From Adineta vaga (lineage: Eukaryota > Animalia > Rotifera): a stretch of DNA of 64,000 bases. Below the pieces are notes generated by a model. The model did no database searches. It saw only the letters and a program-made list of their open reading frames with translations, and was not told the origin of the DNA. The DNA lies in contig CP075497.1 in NCBI GenBank assembly GCA_021613535.1, forward strand, positions 1,302,001 through 1,366,000, read 5' to 3'. Shown here piece by piece: positions 9,901 through 21,149 of the stretch. Position 1 is the stretch's first letter, and the number at the start of each line of letters is the position of its first letter. A program made the translations under genes and the position numbers.

Positions 9901-10249
9901 AGTTAATGAAAATATAATTCGAAATGCATCCGAACGATCAAATATTAATGATATTTCAATAAAAATTCGACGAAAAGTAATTCTTATTTTGATATCATAC
10001 AAAATATATAATAAAATATACTTAATTTAGTTATCTCATTCATATAAACAAATCCGACGATCGTTTAAACAAGAAGATATAACTAATTGTGGTTCAATAT
10101 CTATTAAACCTTTTAAAGATATTTTAAATGAATATAAATGTTCTTTAAATGATGAAGAATTTTATATATTAATATCTCAACTTGATACAAAAATGAATGG
10201 AACAATTAATTATAATCATTTTCTTCAACAATATTTGAAGGATATTTAA
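6919..10249 (+). CDS. EFCAB6: Large multi-EF-hand protein, EF-hand calcium-binding domain-containing protein 6-like; many exons
   Basis: Repeated degenerate EF-hand pairs (FDKKQTGTIENNEMRSLI; WENLRREFVQIDPYRTGFVHSEEF; QLDTKMNGTINYNHFLQQY). Continuous spliced reading frame. The EFCAB6 assignment comes from recalled architecture. Confidence 0.72.
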
Positions 10250-10580
10250 TTTTATTGAATAATTGAGTTTTTTCAATAAGAATAAAAAGAATTTTCTTTT
10301 TTTTAAATGAATCTCATCATTAGGTCTACTTAAGGATGTGGATGAGTAAAGCTACCATAATTGGTTTCGTTCTCTGCTTAATAGAATTCATTGAGTGAGA
10401 GTGTGAAACTGGAGATGATGTTGTCTATCTCCATTCACTCTCATTGTCAAGATCGATTCAATTGATTCATCCATAAAATACATAATATTTCTTTCAATTC
10501 ATTTTCTTAATAAATTAAATTTTTTTCCAATGAAGAATAAACATAATTATTCAATAAATCAAATTTTTTTTTGATCATTG

Positions 10581-10630
10581 AGGGTGGGTTTGGTTTAAGA
10601 GTATAGTCTGACCCTCACACACACCCACAA
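10581..10630. repeat. Degenerate telomere-like (GGGTGT) inverted-repeat hairpin
   Basis: agggtgggtttgg...accctcacacacacccac; related to the copies at 11579, 14157 and 58376. Confidence 0.45.
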
Positions 10631-10745
10631 GCTCTCATACAATATATCACTGATGAAATCAGACGATATACATATTCTCTCTATTTGATCTGCTTCTTAT
10701 TGCAGAGTAATCTATTTTCATTACTAAATCACTACATAAAATAAT

Positions 10746-11305
10746 TTATTGAAATAAAAATAGATATACTGGGAGAATAAAAAAATAATTAATAGAAATG
10801 TTCGTAGTTCGATTAATTCTTGTGGAATATCCTACAAAAGAAATAAAAATAGTGAATTAATTTAATGAAATTTTAACAAAATATATTCGATATTAGAACT
10901 GACCTATTGAATAACAAGTATTCATAGGCATATTTGTATAACGATACAAATGTCAGCGCAGCAATTAATAGTGGTAGTACAACAATCAGAATTCGTTTTA
11001 CATAGTTTTCCCTTCATTGGACAAGAAGTAGGACAACCTTGAGTTGTACATTTACTATCACAGTAACAACTATTCGCATTACTGCTACACCATCGATCAA
11101 GACACTATAATTAGAATCAGTACATGGACTAGATTGACGTTTCTCATGTTTCACAATTCAGTACGCCATTTTTCCACAATATCTCGACGTTCATCATCTT
11201 CCGATGAGTCTACTGATGCGTCTCCATGGGCGGATGTGCATTATTATATATTATCCAGCATCCCAAGATAAGAAACAAACAACTTAATATTCTTGTATTC
11301 ATCAT
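10746..11305 (-). pseudogene. Frameshifted gene for a secreted, Cys-rich, possibly GPI-anchored peptide precursor
   Basis: Signal peptide MMNTRILSCLFLILGCWIIYNNA; acidic segment DASVDSSEDERR; KR site; Cys-rich CLDRWCSSNANSCYCDSKCTTQGCPTSCPMKGKLCKTNSDCC...CC; an intron; hydrophobic tail YFFILPVYLFLFQ*. Needs about 4 frameshifts. Confidence 0.55.
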
Positions 11306-11578
11306 TTTGTCGTGAATAAGTACAAATAAAAGTATTTATGATTCAATAGTGATATTCTCTATGTTATATACGTATTATTTATTATAATATATATCGCGAA
11401 AAATTGATTGACGAAAAAAGCAAAAGTTTATTGAGTATTTATAAAATATCGTAATAAAACGTATTATTTACAGGTAACTATATTGATGTATTTTTGTCTT
11501 TAAACTATCGAAGGTAATTTTTCTTCATTAATAATCAGACACGATTGAAAAATATATTACATTGTATTACATATCTCT

Positions 11579-11628
11579 AGGGTGTGGGTGTGGGTCTGAA
11601 TATAACACCCACACCTACACACACCCCT
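11579..11628. repeat. Telomere-like (TGTGGG)n inverted-repeat hairpin
   Basis: AGGGTGTGGGTGTGGGT - ctgaatataac - ACCCACACCTACACACACCCCT. Confidence 0.7.
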
Positions 11629-12447
11629 AATTTAACTCAATTCATGAATTAAATTTAAAAGAATTCAGAAACCATATGAATTGAGTTGAGTTGCTCAGCA
11701 ATGATATATTTTGTACATTTTGTTAGAAAATTCAAGATGTACACTAACAAAATCTGTTAGTAATTACTACTCATAACCTTTCGAACATATTTCGTTACGG
11801 ACATCGTGTTTATTTAATTAAATTTTTTCATTACTAATTCTTGCTTCTGTTGATTTATTATGCATTGCTAAAAAAATACAGTAAATTTTACTTATATACT
11901 ATACTTCCATCTCCTCCATATTATTGCCATTTATTATAACTATGATAACCTCACAATCTCCAGGTAAATTAGATTCCGAACATCTCCACTTGATTTCGCT
12001 GCTTTTTTCTAATGATGATCTCATCAAAGTGAATCACATAGACTTGTCTAGTCCGAATTCAATTCATATAACATTAGATAGACCATTCGGTATTTTTGTC
12101 GATGAATATTATACATCGAATCATTGTCTATACTTAAATATATTCTTCTTCATTAACATATATATTGATTTTTTCCTCTTATGTACTTTTTTTTAATAAT
12201 AGAGCTGTGTCATGTACTTTTTTTTCCAAAATGAATAATTGCAACAAACATTTTATAGAATATCGATAAGAAAAAACGCATTAAAAAAGACTAATGAGGT
12301 GACGAAACGAATTTTTTCTCTCGATGCGATGTAACCGAAGGTTTATGTATAAAGGAAGAAGACATATCGATATAATTGCATTTGCCTTGAAATCATTCGT
12401 ATGTGTCAGAAGATCGTTTATATTTGATTAGAATACAAAATATCAAA

Positions 12448-13932
12448 ATGAAGAAAACTACTTTGGAATATTTAACATTTCAGCGTGGAAAATGGATTAA
12501 TAAATTATTTATCGAATATGATGACATCACAAAATTCAAGGATATTAAATTCTTTTATGCAAATATTATCGATTATATACGTATTATTTTATGTCTATTT
12601 GCAGCATATACAATTACAACAGATTATTATTTATTAACTGCTAGTTTAATTTTTACCGCTACTTTATTAGATTGGTTAGATGGACCTGTAGCACGTGCTT
12701 ATAATCAATGTTCAATACTTGGTTGTGGACTTGATTGGTCAGCAGATTTATTAAGTCAAATAGTTATGATTATATGGTGGGCTAGATATGATTTTAATGT
12801 TGTTCCTTGGTTATTGATTGCAACATTTATTGAAGTAATAACAGGAATATTTGATTATGCAACAACGACAACATTAAAATATCCTATATTAAGAGAAAAT
12901 CAAACAGGATTTTTTATCATTCTTAATTGGACAATGCCATTAAATTCATATACACAATTTGGAAATTTTCTTTGGTATTCTTATCCTTCATATTGTATAT
13001 TACGAACGTTAGAATGTTGTTATGGTTATAATAAATTAATTCCATTCATTAGTTTATCTACTGCAATACAAGAACAAAATTATGTATTAATTTTATTTTT
13101 ATTAAATCGTTATTGTTTATTAATTCCTTCGATATTTTATATATGGTGTGAAGCAGCATATGGTTTACATATTCTTAGATCATGGAGAGAACCATCGAGA
13201 AAAATTGAAGCAGCAAGTAATGATATAATTTATGATGATGCATTCGATTCGTATCAAGGAGGATTTATTCATTATAAAGTTGTATCAAATAAAAATAAGA
13301 TTTTATTAGAAAATTCTTATGAAGAACTTCAATTCATTTTGAAAGATAGATATGAATTAGCTTTATCAAATTATGAAGTTTTTTGGATTAATTTATGGAA
13401 ACGAACAGGTAATTTAACTGAAAACATTCTTTTAAAAAATCAAGATCAATTAAATACTATGGTTAATGAATTTATTCAAACATATTATCATTTAAATACT
13501 GTTTTATTAGATGGTTATGGTTATATATTAAATCCAATTAATTCTCATGCACAAGTATTTCATATTGATTATACACTAACATATTCAACATTATTTATTC
13601 CATTAGTTCCATTATCAGTTGATAATGCTACACAATATTTAATTCCATCGTTAAACATTGATCCGAAATTATTTGCTGAAGCTACGAAGAATTTCGATAA
13701 AATAAATGTTGATTTATTATTACAAGATCAAAATTATTATTCCGTTCGACAATGTATTGCAAATCCATTTACAGTACTTAAAATGGATTTTGGAACAATT
13801 CATCGTGCGATATCAAATCAAGGTACATATCATCGAGTGATGTTTTATATATCAGTTATAAAAAAAGATCAAATGAATCAAACAAATATTCCTGATGAAC
13901 CTCTTATTGCAACAATCAAAAAAGATTTATAA
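12448..13932 (+). CDS. Intronless fusion: CDP-alcohol phosphotransferase (PI-synthase-like membrane domain) plus C-terminal PhyH-like Fe(II)/2-oxoglutarate dioxygenase domain
   Basis: First ATG at 12448. YANIIDYIR and the full signature DWLDGPVARAYNQCSILGCGLDWSAD (DxxDGxxAR...GxxxDxxxD) with TM helices. C-terminal QVFHIDY...LFIPL...DNATQY...FGTIHRAISNQ..HRVMFY (HxD...H triad and distal Arg). Confidence 0.8.
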   Translation: MKKTTLEYLTFQRGKWINKLFIEYDDITKFKDIKFFYANIIDYIRIILCLFAAYTITTDYYLLTASLIFTATLLDWLDGPVARAYNQCSILGCGLDWSADLLSQIVMIIWWARYDFNVVPWLLIATFIEVITGIFDYATTTTLKYPILRENQTGFFIILNWTMPLNSYTQFGNFLWYSYPSYCILRTLECCYGYNKLIPFISLSTAIQEQNYVLILFLLNRYCLLIPSIFYIWCEAAYGLHILRSWREPSRKIEAASNDIIYDDAFDSYQGGFIHYKVVSNKNKILLENSYEELQFILKDRYELALSNYEVFWINLWKRTGNLTENILLKNQDQLNTMVNEFIQTYYHLNTVLLDGYGYILNPINSHAQVFHIDYTLTYSTLFIPLVPLSVDNATQYLIPSLNIDPKLFAEATKNFDKINVDLLLQDQNYYSVRQCIANPFTVLKMDFGTIHRAISNQGTYHRVMFYISVIKKDQMNQTNIPDEPLIATIKKDL

Positions 13933-14156
13933 AAAGATTGTTAACTTTTGAATATTAATTGAAATACTATAGTTTTTTTAATTTTTTTCTTTTTGAAAGT
14001 ATGGGTTTACGAAAGAACAATAGTTAAGAGTCTGTAATATTTAGTAGATACTCTATGTGTCCACGAAATGATAAAGTTGGTCATTAGATGTATCTACAAC
14101 GATATGTCCAAATAAATACTAGCAACTTATTCAGAGAGATCATCAAATCAGAGCAA

Positions 14157-14201
14157 GGTGTGGGTGTGGCTAAGATAAATATAAATAACCACACCCACAC
14201 C
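14157..14201. repeat. Perfect 13-bp inverted telomere-like repeat hairpin
   Basis: GGTGTGGGTGTGG (14157-14169), 19-nt AT-rich loop, CCACACCCACACC (14189-14201). Confidence 0.8.
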
Positions 14202-14402
14202 CATCCTATACTGTTTCTAGTTATGAAAATCACTGATGAAGTCATTACTTATCATATTAGATGACTATATGTCTTCTTTAAATCAATTGTTTAAAATGTA
14301 AAAGTTTTCGACAATATTAATCATTGAGAGAAACGTTTATATAAACTAAGAAACAATAAACATTAGAAAAATGATGATAAAAAGAATATCAATGAGCAAT
14401 AT

Positions 14403-15641
14403 TTATTGAATATTACAACACGATGAATAACAAGCTGCTTTTTCACCAAAACAACCACAACAATTAAGTGGATAATCATTTTCATAAATCATACTTTGTC
14501 CTTTAGCTGTAGAATATTGACAAAATCGAAACATGTTTTCTAAAGTAAAAGACAAAATAGTTTGAAAAAGAGATAAGACAAAATTCATACGTGATGTTGG
14601 ATTTCGTTTATTAACATAATTTTCTCCCATTGTATAACATATTTCTTCGAAACCCAAACGTTCGACAACAAAATCTATGCGACGCATTGCATTGTATTTA
14701 TTTTTTGTCGGAATATGATGTGTTTCATTATAATCTTTGATAATATTTGCTCGTAAAGGAATATCAAGTGTTTCTTCGTATATTGTTTGTACAAAATTTT
14801 CTATTGAAGATCCTTTTGACCATGATTCTTGTTTTGCTGACCAGAAAAGTGTGCGTTGTCCCTTACGTATTCTTTTATTGTGTAGAAATGAGTTTTGATA
14901 AAACCATGTAGAAGATCGAGTAAACCATTTAACAGTTAACGTTGGTAAATGACGAAAACCTCCATATCCTTTACAATCAGAACAGATTATTTGACCACCA
15001 CCTTTACATAGTGAGAACAATATTCTGTTTTATTACTATACAAATACAACATCTAATTAAGTTCTAAATCATTGAAATTCATACTTGATTCGACCATCGC
15101 CACTACAATAGCTACATGAAATTAATTTTTTTCCTCGACATTTTGAACATCTTGTATATGAAGCACTATTGGTTAACGCATATGTTTCACAAAATTTATC
15201 ACCGGACGGAAGACGAATTTGATAATCATTCCATATATCTCCTACTGCTTCACCAGAACGTTCGGTATTTTCAAAGAATCGTCCTATAAAAACCAGATCA
15301 TGTATAAAAAAAACTAAATCGTTACAGATGAACTTACCTAAGGAATGACTGCCAAGAACTGTATCAGTATCCCAACGATAGGGTGTTTTTTTTGTCCGTA
15401 ATTTTCTTGTTTCCATCAGTATTTTCATTTGACATTTAAAGGCAACTTTTGGTTGAACACTAATTAATTCAGCGTTTTCTATAGGTTTTGAATAGTAGCA
15501 ACATTTTGACTTTAAATATCTTTGAAAGTCAGCCAAAGATTTAGGTAATTCTTTCGGTGGTGACTGAGTGATTTGTGGAGTAACAATGGTATCTGATAGT
15601 TGATTAGCATCGAGAATCAGTTCTGGAGCTACTTTAGTCAT
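14403..15641 (-). CDS. SSUH2: SSUH2-like protein (DnaJ-type CxxCxGxG zinc-finger repeats), spliced
   Basis: CSKCRG, CSYCSGDG, CSLCKGGG, CSDCKGYG repeats; C-terminal YENDYPLNCCGC...CCNIQ; introns near 15280-15335, 15020-15085 and 14540-14590. Confidence 0.7.
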
Positions 15642-17414
15642 TCTGAATTAAAAGAAGCGGTTCAATCTACAACAGATTTAGTAATTTTTCTTTGATCCTA
15701 ACTTTTCCGCTATTCCTTTTTCATGTTAAAGCTAGAAAATTATTTTTAGAAACTAAGAAAGAAAGAAAGAAAGAACAAAACAGATTTTTGCAATCTACAA
15801 CTTTTACTCCATCAAATTCTGTGAAAAAGTTAACAAAGTTGTTCGAAATTCGATTCGTATACACATTATTGTATTTCAAATATTAGTTTTAATATCATAT
15901 ATCTTTAATGATATTTATTTTAATGCACTGTCAAATATCGTTTATAAAAGCAATATATTTATGTGATATTTTAATTCTACACGATTTTCATTCAAGACTA
16001 TATAGACGAAAATTGTAAATTACATTGCTAAACAGACAATAACATTCAATCGTGAATACTATGTCAGTTTTTGTTTGAGGGAGGATATAAATATAGGAGA
16101 AGAAAAGATACTAGTACATCATTGATTCAAAATCAGCAAAAACCTTTTCAAAAACGTACTTACACAGTTTTGTTACCACTTCTCACTATCGTGCAAGAAT
16201 TTATATATCCATGTATATAATTTCTCTGAAAATCCTTTATGAGTTGATGTCTGTTTTGAATAAGAGAAATAAAAAAAGCAGAAGTATACGTTTCACAATG
16301 TTTTATATAGTTCTTCTGATTCTCGAAAATTCTTATCGAACACTCAAGACTTCTCGCACTATTAATAACGCATAACATTTTTTCGAAACATCAATAAAAA
16401 TATTTGAATAATCGGGGAAACTCTTATCAGTTTTATGTAAAAATGTAAAGGATGAGAGTGATTTTATACTCTCTAATCAGAATTCGCTCTGACTTTTGCT
16501 AAAATTCCTATAAAACTATAAAGTTTTCATGACAAGATCTATAAAAAAGTTTCTTTTATTCATAGAATTTCACTTAAAAAGTGTGTTTCTTCAAATCTCT
16601 CTTCGCATATTACATTCAATAACAAAGTCTGTTGTGTGATACACCACGCGTCATAGCTAGCGTTATTTTTGTATCCTATGTTATTATGACAAATCATTAA
16701 ATCATGGCATCGTACATACATCGAAATAATTCGGTCTCATTATTTGATGTTTATGGTTTTCGCCCTCAATATACAATTTACACCGTTTCATGAAAGAAAG
16801 ACCGAATCATGTCCATCACATACATATAATAGATATATTCCCTCATATCTATACTGATTATCGAATATAAAAAATCTTTCATTGACATATTTTAAAACAT
16901 TGTTTATCATTTCAAGAGATATAATAAGATATCTCTATCGGTTTGAATAACAAATTTTTGATTACAACAGATATTAAATATTGAACTTTCCAAATTTCAC
17001 CATTTCTCCTCTTTTCAATAGATTTTTGTTCGCTGATTTTTACATTGCTATTAGTCAATAATTTATAAAAGCATGTTTTGTTTAAACTGTTGTTGCCGGA
17101 CATTAATAAAATATGATTATTATAGTGATAGAAAGTAGAATAAATCAATATAGAAGTTTATGTTTACTATCAAATAGTAAAAATATCTTTAGGTTCGTGT
17201 TATTCAACATATAACAATCTAATGTTTCTTCTTCAGTCCGAAAAGAATTCATGCTTTTCCTGTATTTATGCCGTCCGCCTCGTCCCTTCATAGATGAGTA
17301 CAAGATGAAATTATTCTTCTCGTCTCATAAGATTACATCCTATATACATATTTTATCGTTGGGCAGCCAAGTTGAGTGGCAATTTTATCTTACTTAACAC
17401 AAACAAACACGAAT

Positions 17415-19937
17415 TTATAATTTCTTTTTCACGCGTTCGTAATTGTTTTTCCATTGCTGAGACCGAAGATGATCTGAAGGCAATGATTCTTGTGCAATTT
17501 GTACAGCACGCTCATAAAATGAACAGGCTTTTGAATAATCACCCATGTTGTCATACACCAAACCAATGTTGTTGTAAGTTGATGCCAAATGAGGATGATT
17601 TGGAAGAAGTGATTGTTGTAGAATTGCAAGGGCTTTTTCATAATATGAAAGTGCTTCTGGATAGTCACCTATCTTGGAATACACCAAACCAATGTTGCCG
17701 TAAGATGCAGCCAAATCAGGATGGTTTGGAGGAAGTGATTGTTGTCGAATTGCAAGAGCTTTCTCATAAAATGAAAGTGCTTTTGGATAGTCACTCATGT
17801 TGTCATACACCAAACCGATGTTGTTGTAGGGTGAAGCCAAATCAGGATGATTTGGAGGAAGTGATTGTTGTTGAATTGCTAAGACATTTTCAAAGCATGA
17901 AAGTGCTTTTGGATAATCATTCATTTGTATATACAACGCGCCGATGTTGTTGTAAGATTTAGCCAAATGAGGATGATTTGGAGGAAGTGATTGTTGTTTA
18001 ATTGCAAGAGCTTTCTCATGAGACGAAAGTGCTTTTGGATGGTCTCCCATGTTGTCATACACCAAACCAATGTTATTGTAAGTTGATGCCAAATGAGGAT
18101 GATTTGGAGGAAGTGATTGTTGTTGAATTGCTAGAACTTTTTCAAAGCATGAAAGTGCTTTTGGGTAGGCCCCCATGTTAGAATACACCAAACCGATGTT
18201 GCCATAAGATGAAGCCAAATCAGGATGGTTTGGAGGAAGTGATTGTTGTTTGATTGCAAGAGCTTTCTCATGAGATGAAAGTGCTTTTGGATAGTCACCC
18301 ATGTTTTTATATACTAAACCGATATTGTTGTAAGACATAGCTAAATCAAGATGATTTGGAGGAAGTGACTGTTGTTTGATTGCAAGGGCTTTCTCATGAG
18401 ATGAAAGTGCTTTTGGATAGTCACCCATGTTGTCATACACCCCACCAATGTTGTTGTAAGATTTAGCCAACTCAGGATGTTGAGGAGAGAGAGTTTTTTC
18501 ATAGATGGCAAGTGATTTTTCATAGAATCTAATCGCCTCTTTATATTCTCCTTGATTGTCTTTGATCGAACCAAGTTGATTATAAATTGCTGCCTTTTCA
18601 CTTTCCTTCGTTGTTTGATCAAGTAGTATTTCATAAATCTCTTGAGATTTGTCATTTTGACCCATGTCTTTTAGTACTAAACCCAATCTGTACCATCCCT
18701 CTACGTCTGGAAAACTCTCTTCTCGTATGCGCTCAGTCAGTGCATGTAATTCTTTGTCATTATCACTGGTAAGTATCAAACTCACTTCGAAGAGTTCGTT
18801 ATTTCCACCCATTTGTTTGATATCCTGAATACGGAACACGCTGTGCATTGAAAATAGTACTTCATCTTCTTTCGAGAAGTAACTGACGCCACCAATTGAA
18901 GCGAATGCTATCGTTGATTGACGAGGATCTATTGTCATTACAAAGAGAATTCCCACCAAATCTGGATTACTTGCAGCACTTCGTGCAAAGCCAAGTGAAA
19001 TATCTCGGATCTTGCTGGTGGATAAGAAGTTATTAAATGATAATAATCCACCTTTTGTTTGCTTTAGTTGTTCGAAATCTATTTTTGATAATCCTTGTCC
19101 ACGATAAACTGTGAAAACATGATCGATATGTTGTTCTTGATGCACGGATTCAATGTGTCGATGTAGATCGCTGATAAAGAAGCCCATCCGTGTCATAATA
19201 TCACCATTCATTTCTCTTAATGCACGGTTAAGCATAGGATAGAGAACACTTTCCTTGGTATACCACCATATTGGTCTTTGCTGATAATATTTTGACGCCA
19301 ATTGCTGGATATTGTTCAGTTCTTCGCCATTATCTGCTAATGCCTCAGGACAATAGGAGACAAATTCTTGAATATGTGTAGCGTCGAATTTAATGGTTAA
19401 TAATATCTCTTTAAGGATTTGTGTGTACATGAACGAAGGATCTAATTGATTCAACTTTTTGCCAGATCCGACGAAACTAATGGAGATGGCATTCTGTTCG
19501 CATTTTTGTACTGCTTGTTTGAGTGCTTCACACATAGGTATGATCTCTGTGAAGACTCCCTTGATCTTTGGCCATTCTTTTGTCCATGCTTTATGTCGTT
19601 GCTTGTTGCCACAAAAGATAAAGATCGAATCCATTTGAGACATCCCATGTATCTGAGGTACAATATGCTGTCCGAGTGAACCTGAAATAATTATGCATGC
19701 CTTACGATCTTTGATTGTTTTGATGAATTGAATGCATTGATCGCCATCTGTATAGGTATTCACATCGTTAACAATACTTCTTAATCGAGTGATGGTATTT
19801 TGAGTGTCTTCATTGTTGTCGTCGATGTTGGCATCTAACCATATAAGAAGAACGTTTTGGATCTTTTGTATATCGATACGTTGACGTCCACGTGCTTCTT
19901 TATTTGTTTTAGAAATAGTTGATTTGCTGTTTCCCAT
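17415..19937 (-). CDS. Intronless NAD:arginine ADP-ribosyltransferase (R-S-E class) with N-terminal receiver-like domain and C-terminal 42-aa TPR array
   Basis: ATG at 19937 (MGNSKS). ART motifs VYRG / FLSTS / EDEVLF. About 9 TPR units of 126 bp (LAxSYNNIGxVYxxMGDYPKALSxxEKALAIxQQSLPPNHP). Confidence 0.9.
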   Translation of the reverse strand: MGNSKSTISKTNKEARGRQRIDIQKIQNVLLIWLDANIDDNNEDTQNTITRLRSIVNDVNTYTDGDQCIQFIKTIKDRKACIIISGSLGQHIVPQIHGMSQMDSIFIFCGNKQRHKAWTKEWPKIKGVFTEIIPMCEALKQAVQKCEQNAISISFVGSGKKLNQLDPSFMYTQILKEILLTIKFDATHIQEFVSYCPEALADNGEELNNIQQLASKYYQQRPIWWYTKESVLYPMLNRALREMNGDIMTRMGFFISDLHRHIESVHQEQHIDHVFTVYRGQGLSKIDFEQLKQTKGGLLSFNNFLSTSKIRDISLGFARSAASNPDLVGILFVMTIDPRQSTIAFASIGGVSYFSKEDEVLFSMHSVFRIQDIKQMGGNNELFEVSLILTSDNDKELHALTERIREESFPDVEGWYRLGLVLKDMGQNDKSQEIYEILLDQTTKESEKAAIYNQLGSIKDNQGEYKEAIRFYEKSLAIYEKTLSPQHPELAKSYNNIGGVYDNMGDYPKALSSHEKALAIKQQSLPPNHLDLAMSYNNIGLVYKNMGDYPKALSSHEKALAIKQQSLPPNHPDLASSYGNIGLVYSNMGAYPKALSCFEKVLAIQQQSLPPNHPHLASTYNNIGLVYDNMGDHPKALSSHEKALAIKQQSLPPNHPHLAKSYNNIGALYIQMNDYPKALSCFENVLAIQQQSLPPNHPDLASPYNNIGLVYDNMSDYPKALSFYEKALAIRQQSLPPNHPDLAASYGNIGLVYSKIGDYPEALSYYEKALAILQQSLLPNHPHLASTYNNIGLVYDNMGDYSKACSFYERAVQIAQESLPSDHLRSQQWKNNYERVKKKL
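17500..18600 (-). repeat. Coding tandem repeat with a 126-bp unit (TPR), 8 highly similar copies plus one divergent copy
   Basis: Recurrent ggaggaagtgattgttg / gaaagtgcttttggat at 126-bp spacing. Confidence 0.9.
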
Positions 19938-21149
19938 TGAAGTTGTTTGATATGTTCTTGGATAGTTGGATGTTGTGAATTTCAATTATTTGAAAAGATA
20001 TGAATAATTGACTGATGAAAATTTGGTCTTTATATATGTTTTTATTGTCTTCCCAGAGGTTTTTGTTTGTGTTCGAGAACGCCTTCGTTTTTTCTTCCGC
20101 TGATTTTTATATTTCTTCCAGAAGCATAAAATAAGCACGTTAACAAACAGAGATTTTTGTTTTTCTTTCTGAAATATTTTCAAGTACTTTTAGTTCCTGT
20201 TTACTTCTCTGTTCTTTGACTCGAGAGAAAATAGAACAGTGCAAGTATAAAATCGAATGACGAAAAAAGTTTTCTTCGTCAGTCAGTTATTACGTCTCAT
20301 AGAATATGTGAAAATTTTTCGACTGTCAGAATGTCAATTATATTTGTCCGGAAATAAATCTCTCTTACTAGATTTCACATATCTAATTATGATAATGAAA
20401 ACTTTTGAACATAAATCATAAAGATATGTATGTATGGAGTTTCAAATAGTATATTCAAAAATTATTTTTCTGCGTTGACAAAATTATTTTTTTCTTCACT
20501 CTCGAAATACTACAATTTCATCTTTTCTTTTTCTTATTTGATGAATGAGAATAAACTGTATAGTTGCAAAGAAAAACAAAACTGGTAAATTTATTCAAGA
20601 AAAGAAAAGAAATGTAAGGCACATTATATATCCAATGATTGTTTAAATATTCCTGAGAAATTATCTTAACATATTCTCATTTTCTCGTATTGTATGCATA
20701 ACTATTTGTAAGGATCATTTGAAAATATATTATAACATTCAATCTCAAATTGATAATTATCTAAATATTTCGTTTATTAAAATAAATTGTTTTTTCTTTG
20801 GAGTGAAATCACTTTCTACTGTAGTTTTAATATGATGTCTATCTCTCTTTCGAATAATTTGTATGACTTTTGTCAGTAATAACATTTTTTTTTGATAATT
20901 TTCATGATGAATTTCTTTAACGTATGACTATCTGTATATCAACAAATTTATTGATTTTACGATGGATTCAAGAGTATGAAGATTTATATATATATATCTA
21001 TTTTCTACGAAATATGTTTCTAAATGTAGATCAGAGATTTAATCGAAATGATAATGATAGAATTATTGTTATCATTAATAATATAATATTAGTTTTGTAG
21101 TATCATTAAAAGAAAAAAGTCAAAGGAATTTTATGTAACTCCATAGTGA

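Follow-up and report, generated by a model that had tools for sequence, protein, structure and literature searches.

A 64,000-nucleotide stretch of the genome of the bdelloid rotifer Adineta vaga (assembly GCA_021613535.1, contig CP075497.1, positions 1,302,001 to 1,366,000 of the forward strand), referred to here as the window, carries a gene that is real, intact and transcribed and that encodes a two-domain membrane enzyme. Its N-terminal half is a predicted six-helix cytidine diphosphate (CDP)-alcohol phosphotransferase with every residue of the catalytic motif, and its C-terminal half is modelled as a divergent PhyH-like Fe(II)/2-oxoglutarate (2OG) oxygenase with an invariant HxD...H motif and an Arg at +11. 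The pairing of the two domains is conserved: they are fused in bacteria, protists and bdelloid rotifers, and at one bacterial locus neighbouring genes encode them. Positions below are those of the window unless another locus is named.

The open reading frame (ORF) extends from 12403 to 13932 on the plus strand, 509 codons beginning at an upstream GTG. Its first ATG, at 12448, yields a complete intronless coding sequence (12448..13932, +) of 494 amino acids (aa) plus stop, and an alignment of homologues shows the same start methionine in the rotifer proteins. A 509-codon frame in DNA of about 25% GC, with full-length homologues at 33-73% identity, is far beyond chance, and we regard the ORF as real. 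The fusion gene is present as a single copy in the rotifer genome (100.8 Mb in 6 contigs). The window occupies 1.30-1.37 Mb of contig 6, a chromosome-scale contig of 13.9 Mb, and its GC content ranges from 23 to 37% per 2-kb bin, with a value of 25.5% around the fusion gene. Genes nearby in the window are animal genes, including an ammonium-transporter (Amt) exon and an inward-rectifier K+ channel (Kir). Together with a spliced gene immediately downstream, they indicate that the ORF is part of the animal genome and not a contaminant.

We compared contigs from four sequencing runs, presumed to be RNA, with window positions 10200-16100; the contigs carry neither strand nor expression level. One contig of run X3 skips 14540-14590, a segment with GT..AG ends on the minus strand, which identifies X3 as RNA because it is a spliced contig on the neighbouring gene. 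The same run yielded a 776-nt contig, 13300-14075, that comprises the 3' half of the ORF and 143 nt past the stop codon, giving a 3' untranslated region of at least 13933..14075 (+). Contigs of runs X1, X2 and X4 lay solely within the ORF (12508-13894). In the 2.1 kb upstream of the ORF, the four runs gave no contigs apart from one 21-nt fragment. A possible TATA box, 'tataaagg', lies at 12348-12355, about 100 nt 5' of the ATG.

These results bear on an original prediction, made from the letters of the window alone, which had proposed one intronless ORF at 12448-13932 with a complete CDP-alcohol phosphotransferase signature, about six transmembrane helices and a PhyH-like dioxygenase domain with an HxD...H...R pattern. 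The ORF is as described, and its transcription, on which the prediction depended, is supported by the contigs of X3 and, if those runs are RNA as presumed, of the other three runs. The landmarks it had placed (DWLDGPVAR...GCGLDWSAD, HID, IHRAISN and the downstream Arg) all lie where it had put them, and both domain assignments stood up to the analyses that follow.

The N-terminal half of the protein matched the Pfam family CDP-OH_P_transf (PF01066) over aa 37-140 (E 1.6e-12, 48.5 bits against a cut-off of 22). In a full-length AlphaFold2 (AF2) model, with a predicted local distance difference test (pLDDT) score of 84.2, long helices spanned residues 37-55, 61-84, 90-114, 116-142, 170-191 and 212-245. 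On the basis of Pfam, these helices and structural matches, we place the membrane domain with its six transmembrane helices at aa 37-245 (12556..13182, +). The catalytic signature D75xxD78G79xxA82R83x8G92xxxD96xxxD100, DWLDGPVARAYNQCSILGCGLDWSAD in translation, is encoded at 12670..12747 (+). Across 19 homologues, D78, G79, A82, G92, D96 and D100 did not vary, whereas D75 and R83 were present in at least 90%. In structure searches with aa 28-250, archaeal PSS (7b1k) matched with a Z of 12.4 (root-mean-square deviation 4.6 over 148 residues) and PgsA (7drj) with a Z of 11.3 (3.8 over 169 residues); a Z of 11-12 is only moderately specific for a helical bundle. The PIP synthase 6h53 was also among the best sequence and structure matches of the transferase domain. 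The NCBIfam equivalogs AIP synthase, PssA, ClsA and PgsA gave weak matches far under their cut-offs, the best being 31.9 bits against 180 and 31.7 against 107. Because all of these equivalog cut-offs were missed, the domain is not assignable to any characterised specificity. In one homologue from Rotaria sp. Silwood1 (P0004), a Cys replaces the conserved Arg of the D..DG..AR motif and there are further changes nearby, so that the transferase activity of this paralogue may be altered or lost.

A low-confidence linker, aa 246-258 (13183..13221, +; in the full-length model the pLDDT falls below 50 over aa 252-258), leads into the second domain, aa ~259-485 (13222..13902, +). When the C-terminal 240 aa were modelled alone from a 19-sequence alignment, AF2 returned a double-stranded beta-helix (DSBH) with a pLDDT of 88.8 and a predicted template modelling score (pTM) of 0.88. 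Foldseek matched this model to more than 260 PDB chains at E<=1e-3 (top E ~1e-6), led by SnoK, AusE, KanJ, PrhA, AsqJ and PHYHD1, and 49 of the best 50 of these chains were Fe/2OG or related non-heme iron oxygenases. A second structure search (VIA), over about 180-209 aligned residues, gave Z values of 15.5 for AviO1, 14.8 for SnoK, 14.7 for the proline hydroxylase H11, 14.6 for MysH, 13.9 for EctD, 13.6 for KanJ, 13.1 for PHYHD1 and 12.6 for PHYH. Neighbours by shape in the ESM Atlas included PhyH clusters (TM-score 0.65-0.69). Identity to solved structures was 8-16%.

The proposed first two iron ligands, H372-I-D374, are encoded at 13561..13569 (+). The distal ligand and the proposed 2OG-binding Arg lie in H452-R-A-I-S-N457-...-R463 (13801..13836, +), with IHRAISN beginning at 13798, the codon of H452 at 13801 and that of R463 at 13834. 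H372, D374, H452, R453, N457 and R463 were all invariant in 19 fusion proteins, in which Q369, Y375, N393 and R434 were additional polar invariant residues alongside R453. In an alignment of 64 members of the wider family, H372 and D374 remained invariant and H452 (at least 90%), R453, N457 and R463 were near-invariant. The pattern H.D...H.{10}R was found in 80 of 95 representatives of at least 200 aa. A profile built from the 64 sequences matched PDB sequences weakly (E 0.016-0.5), and the PhyH-like matches were EasH (E 0.016), AndA and KanJ. In this alignment the family motif 'Q.fHiD' falls on 'QKWHRD' of EasH, so that HID pairs with its WHRD segment, and the H452...R463 stretch aligns to THRGSDNRSDKMR of EasH and VHGGGANRSDKPR of AndA. 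The family consensus 'HRGiaNtgdydR' pairs with HRGSDNRSDKMR in EasH and HGGGANRSDKPR in AndA, which keeps the distal His, the Asn at +5 and the Arg at +11 in register. In EasH and AndA the Arg at +11 binds the C5 carboxylate of 2OG. Fold, alignment and invariance together suggest that the three ligands converge on one metal site.

Sequence models were of little help in recognizing this domain. The window protein had no Pfam match in its C-terminal domain at E<=10, the PhyH model (PF05721) included; NCBIfam found nothing in the C-terminal half, and a 19-sequence profile of the domain had no match among PDB sequences. Pfam likewise left the oxygenase domain of ten relatives without a family, and PF05721 matched just 3 of 64 relatives (best E 0.02). 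UniRef names a 157-aa Rotaria sordida fragment of the domain 'Phytanoyl-CoA dioxygenase'. The oxygenase half is a separate family that Pfam does not model, inside the PhyH-like fold class.

A word-indexed search returned 28 homologues with near-full-length coverage. Identity to the window protein was 54-66% for Rotaria species, 64-73% for sequences without an organism name and 33-45% for proteins from metagenomes and metagenome-assembled genomes (MAGs). Two transcriptome entries of EukProt were among the full-length homologues, one of them from the kinetoplastid Apiculatamorpha spiralis. When 1.84 billion cluster representatives were searched exhaustively by HMMER with a profile of the C-terminal domain, just 256 scored at E<=1e-3, many of them stand-alone proteins of 220-250 aa, and the transferase motif was present in most of the long representatives. 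A pattern scan of 185,579 species genomes found 13 loci, all in MAGs of Actinomycetota, Acidobacteriota, Verrucomicrobiota and a Turneriella (Spirochaetota). Among 401 genomes sampled from the phylum of one carrier, the fusion occurred in that carrier alone. From these counts we conclude that the family is rare and patchy. A scan of viral contigs with a narrow alignment found no relative, and two giant-virus- or phage-like Atlas clusters are unconfirmed look-alikes. The original prediction knew of no characterised protein with this architecture; our literature searches on the architecture, the bacterial cluster described below and bdelloid reports likewise found no description.

In a maximum-likelihood tree of 46 full-length proteins, a eukaryote clade and a bacterial clade received support of 99 and 96, respectively, in the Shimodaira-Hasegawa-like approximate likelihood ratio test. 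Ten rotifer sequences fell in the eukaryote clade, as did both EukProt entries and metagenomic sequences, one of which lies on a contig that bears a COG6 gene. Rotifers formed one group (support 100) made up of two paralogue clades; in one of these the window protein joined a Rotaria subclade, implying that the gene has been resident since before that split. The tree came from a quick search with a midpoint root, the AT-rich rotifer rows were marked as compositionally heterogeneous, and a large number of rows had no taxon label. Rotifers were the sole animals among matches bearing an organism name. Given this and the absence of introns, acquisition from another eukaryote is the simplest reading, and it probably took place before the lineage of the window separated from Rotaria; ancient patchy inheritance is an alternative that we do not favour as the simplest. 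The prediction had suggested horizontal acquisition. A foreign origin is plausible, the gene lying without introns among normal animal neighbours in the only animals named, but a direct bacterial donor is not indicated, since the rotifers nest within the eukaryote clade.

We clustered the ORFs within 6 kb of the gene at 15 bacterial loci with the fusion or a split pair. An MsbA-like ATP-binding cassette (ABC) exporter was present at 9 of the 15 loci (MsbA_rel E 1.6e-125; some with a cyclic nucleotide (cNMP)-binding domain), a class-I S-adenosylmethionine-dependent methyltransferase at 6, a SET-domain protein of about 200 aa at 6, and a nucleotidyltransferase fused to a CobD-like pyridoxal phosphate-dependent decarboxylase at 4 (TIGR01140, CobD, E 1e-47 to 1e-54). 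The nucleotidyltransferase half of this last gene gave a weak match to the IPCT/DIPPS model, and the ABC partner also resembles exporters of the HlyB/HepA type. In an actinomycete MAG (L002), a TagD/ECT-type cytidylyltransferase (CTP_transf_like) lies directly downstream of the fusion. The split version (L006) consists of abutting genes for a methyltransferase, a phosphotransferase (239 aa), an oxygenase (232 aa) and a SET protein. Stand-alone oxygenase genes adjoined SET (L037), SET and ABC (L039/L040) or methyltransferase and SET (L041) genes; in L039, the 244-aa gene next to the stand-alone oxygenase does not encode a phosphotransferase. The weak NCBIfam matches 'DVU_1551' and 'DVU_1556' gave no lead.

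The prediction had portrayed a candidate single-gene pathway, and this part of it did not hold for bacteria, where the fusion belongs to a cluster of about five genes. The conservation of the fusion in protists and bacteria also shows that rotifers did not invent it. A search of the rotifer genome for close homologues of the SET partners returned generic SET matches alone. On the eukaryote-like contig with the COG6 gene, a gene fusing an ATP-grasp (D-Ala-D-Ala-ligase-like) domain to a SET domain (L021:7875-9377) adjoins the phosphotransferase-oxygenase fusion. Its SET part is 26% identical to a SET protein of the bacterial cluster (E 2e-8), a single case that may be coincidence.

Three further features of the bacterial loci were seen. 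Cluster transporters carried a C-terminal cNMP-binding domain (L002:16046-18340, L003:5641-7830 and L041:3390-6494; MsbA-like ABC proteins and one member of the major facilitator superfamily), which suggests that export of the product might be cNMP-gated. Upstream of the fusion in GCA_009612815.1 (L001:1-5657), polyamine genes were densely grouped: four paralogues of spermidine/spermine synthase together with genes for an amine oxidase, an AdoMet decarboxylase and an OGFOD2-like 2OG oxygenase. On one bacterial contig, a 455-aa gene resembling Aminotran_1_2 and alpha-oxoamine synthases (L004:5665-7032, minus strand) lay 3 kb from the fusion, a single case that could hint at a link to sphingolipids.

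We hypothesize that the fusion is a bifunctional enzyme facing the cytoplasm that installs a CDP-activated amino-alcohol phosphate on a lipid and then oxidatively tailors the head group, and we give this reading, in which the substrates are inferred, odds of slightly better than even (about 0.55). The CDP-alcohol site of the transferase family is on the cytoplasmic side of the membrane. With six transmembrane helices, both termini lie on the same side; the transferase site and the oxygenase would thus both be cytoplasmic and would act in sequence on one molecule, the Fe(II)- and 2OG-dependent oxygenase being positioned beside the transferase active site. In bacteria, the decarboxylase-nucleotidyltransferase or the cytidylyltransferase would make a soluble CDP-activated alcohol. 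The transferase would place the phospho-amino-alcohol, perhaps ethanolamine- or aminopropanol-like, on a lipid hydroxyl, and the oxygenase would next hydroxylate or otherwise oxidise the polar head group. The bacterial product would then be N-methylated by the class I and SET methyltransferases and flipped outward by the MsbA-like exporter. The rotifer, with the fusion gene alone, would draw on its own pool of CDP-ethanolamine or CDP-choline.

Several features of the clusters led us to this scheme. The genes next to the fusion include two unrelated kinds of nucleotidyl- or cytidylyltransferase, each in a different lineage, and a phospho-amino-acid decarboxylase, and this suggests a need for a soluble CDP-amino-alcohol donor. 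An amine in the head group would account for the two methyltransferases of the cluster, and a lipid product for its MsbA-like transporter. The invariant Q369, Y375, N393, R434 and R453 fit a phosphate- or carboxylate-bearing substrate, and would do so under either order of the two steps.

A number of points weigh against this scheme. Its substrates rest on inference. The nearest relatives of the transferase (PssA, PgsA and PIP synthase) take CDP-diacylglycerol (CDP-DAG) and not a soluble CDP-alcohol, which fits the reversed order of steps considered below, and nucleotidyltransferase genes were found within 6 kb at just 5 of the 15 loci. The oxygenase substrate need not be the transferase product, as the L039/L040 loci have a DSBH-SET-ABC module without an adjacent phosphotransferase. 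The geometry between the two domains is uncertain at a pTM of 0.55 for the full-length model. The rotifer product may differ from the bacterial one, given that the rotifer has no close homologues of the SET partners. Finally, the RNA label of the runs is a guess for all except X3, where splicing supports it, and coverage of the fusion gene by contigs of the RNA runs is low.

The order of the two reactions could be the reverse, which we judge unlikely. The oxygenase would then hydroxylate a soluble, possibly N-methylated, amine or amino-acid derivative, and the transferase would phosphatidylate the new hydroxyl from CDP-DAG, much as PssA and PgsA do with serine and glycerol-3-phosphate, to give a new zwitterionic or cationic phospholipid head group. 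The best transferase matches (AIP synthase, pssA, ClsA, pgsA, 6h53, 7drj and PSS) are all users of CDP-DAG or CDP-archaeol and favour such an order, although the similarity scores to CDP-DAG enzymes are all weak and far below family cut-offs. The nearest DSBH structures, EctD, KanJ, proline hydroxylase and MysH, act on small polar molecules, the invariant R434, R453, N393, Q369 and Y375 suggest an anionic or polar small substrate, and the SET and methyltransferase partners could make the methylated amine. What the reversed order leaves unexplained is the two unrelated kinds of cytidylyl- or nucleotidyltransferase beside the fusion, since CDP-DAG comes from the housekeeping enzyme CdsA.

It is also conceivable, if quite improbable, that the oxygenase targets the hydrophobic part of a lipid (acyl 2-hydroxylation, compare PHYH on phytanoyl-CoA) or some other membrane lipid, and that the fusion acts as a membrane tether beside a phospholipid synthase. 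PHYH and PHYHD1 are indeed among the structural matches (Z 12.6-13.1), and bacterial lipid-modifying hydroxylases exist in LpxO and OlsC. The invariant pocket residues, however, are polar or charged, the best structural neighbours take polar small molecules, and the constant partners of the fusion are amine methyltransferases and not acyl-chain enzymes.

The prediction had offered a phosphonolipid as one possible product. The oxygenase would in that case act like PhnY, which belongs to the PhyH-like fold class, on 2-aminoethylphosphonate (AEP), and the transferase would install AEP or hydroxy-AEP from its cytidine monophosphate conjugate, CMP-AEP. The bacterial context lends this no support: phosphoenolpyruvate (PEP) mutase was above cut-off in none of five bacterial carrier genomes, no PepM or Ppd genes occurred in any neighbourhood examined, and the CobD-like phospho-amino-acid decarboxylase of the cluster makes phosphate esters, not phosphonates. 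In the rotifer genome, by contrast, a match outside the window, at G000:C2:1855205-1855933 (L032), exceeds the cut-off of the PEP mutase model TIGR02320 (359.9 bits, E 2.5e-106), and the rotifer may be able to make C-P compounds. This match contains one in-frame TAG, possibly within an intron. A phosphonate role is thus possible solely as a rotifer-specific use, and its probability is low. The further suggestion of the prediction, a part in protecting membranes during desiccation, drew no support from the analyses.

Another conjecture, to which we assign very little weight, is that a protein, glycan or polymer receives a methylated and hydroxylated phospho-alcohol and is exported by the ABC transporter. 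SET domains are classically protein-lysine methyltransferases, the HlyB/HepA-like character of the ABC partner would fit, and so would the DSBH-SET-ABC module of L039/L040 with no adjacent transferase. Yet the strongest similarity of the ABC partner is to lipid flippases of the MsbA type, the eukaryotic copies have no transporter context, and to our knowledge the only acceptors of CDP-alcohol phosphotransferases are lipids or small molecules. The view of the gene as a contaminant, or as a foreign relic in decay and without function in the rotifer, which could appeal to its single copy, intronless structure and low contig coverage in the RNA runs, is largely refuted by its place between animal genes on a 13.9-Mb chromosome-scale contig, a GC content equal to that of its surroundings, an open frame with all catalytic residues intact, orthologues and paralogues conserved across Rotaria species, and RNA contigs that cover the gene.

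Two other genes of the window deserve mention. The downstream neighbour, at 14403-15641 on the minus strand, contains the 51-nt intron (14540-14590) that is spliced in run X3, and its product is Cys-rich, with CxxCxGxG repeats and no Pfam match. At 17415-19985, also on the minus strand, an uninterrupted ORF of 856 aa encodes an ADP-ribosyltransferase exoenzyme-like domain (PF03496, aa 234-391) and many TPR repeats; the local GC content reaches 37.5% there, compared with about 25% around it.

Both halves of the fusion protein come from well-known superfamilies, and their combination is undescribed and conserved; the role in a tailored membrane lipid that we propose for it is testable and unproven. 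Going further, we suggest tentatively, and at clearly less than even odds, that the fusion and its bacterial SET, methyltransferase and ABC partners make up a previously undescribed pathway to a new class of membrane lipid, in which a dedicated Fe/2OG oxygenase hydroxylates a phospho-head group resembling an amino-alcohol or amino acid, whether to provide the hydroxyl for attachment or to tailor the product, and that the core enzyme was captured by protists and then by bdelloid rotifers. We know of no Fe/2OG oxygenase dedicated to a phospholipid head group. If this proposal is true, an animal has a lipid that no other animal makes. Conservation across bacteria, protists and an animal lineage, together with a recurrent cluster, points to a real and unexplored lipid-tailoring chemistry for which the cluster supplies candidates for the other steps. 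For bdelloid biology, the gene would add an expressed, long-resident foreign gene, with nearest relatives that are eukaryotic and not bacterial.

The closest relatives of the membrane half are the small six-transmembrane enzymes of PF01066, namely PssA/PSS, PgsA and the PIP/AIP synthases, with which it has in common the D..DG..AR..G...D...D motif, six transmembrane helices and a structural similarity of Z 11-12. Unlike these enzymes, which have no such additional domain, the fusion has its own N-terminal beta-hairpin ('F.GGKW') and a 240-aa C-terminal oxygenase. The oxygenase half shares the DSBH (Z 12.6-15.5), the HxD...H motif, the Asn at +5 and the Arg at +11 with the PhyH-like enzymes AviO1, SnoK, EctD, KanJ, EasH/AndA and PHYH/PHYHD1, and it has the small size of AviO1. 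It differs from them in being missed by the Pfam PhyH model, in its 8-16% identity to solved structures and in being tethered to the membrane by the fusion. Oxidative and methyl tailoring of the polar parts of lipids by enzymes encoded beside a synthase is familiar from the hydroxylases LpxO and OlsC and the head-group N-methyltransferases PmtA and OlsG, and the fusion cluster resembles these in concept. LpxO and OlsC are of the Asp/Asn beta-hydroxylase type, not PhyH-like, and are not fused to a synthase, and we know of no SET-domain partner for any of the four. The nearest parallel in design is the bifunctional IPCT/DIPPS of hyperthermophiles, a cytidylyltransferase joined to a CDP-alcohol phosphotransferase. 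It follows the same principle, that of a soluble cytoplasmic enzyme fused to a six-transmembrane transferase so that consecutive steps are coupled. The soluble domain of IPCT/DIPPS, however, is N-terminal and makes the CDP-alcohol, whereas that of the window fusion is C-terminal and is an oxygenase.

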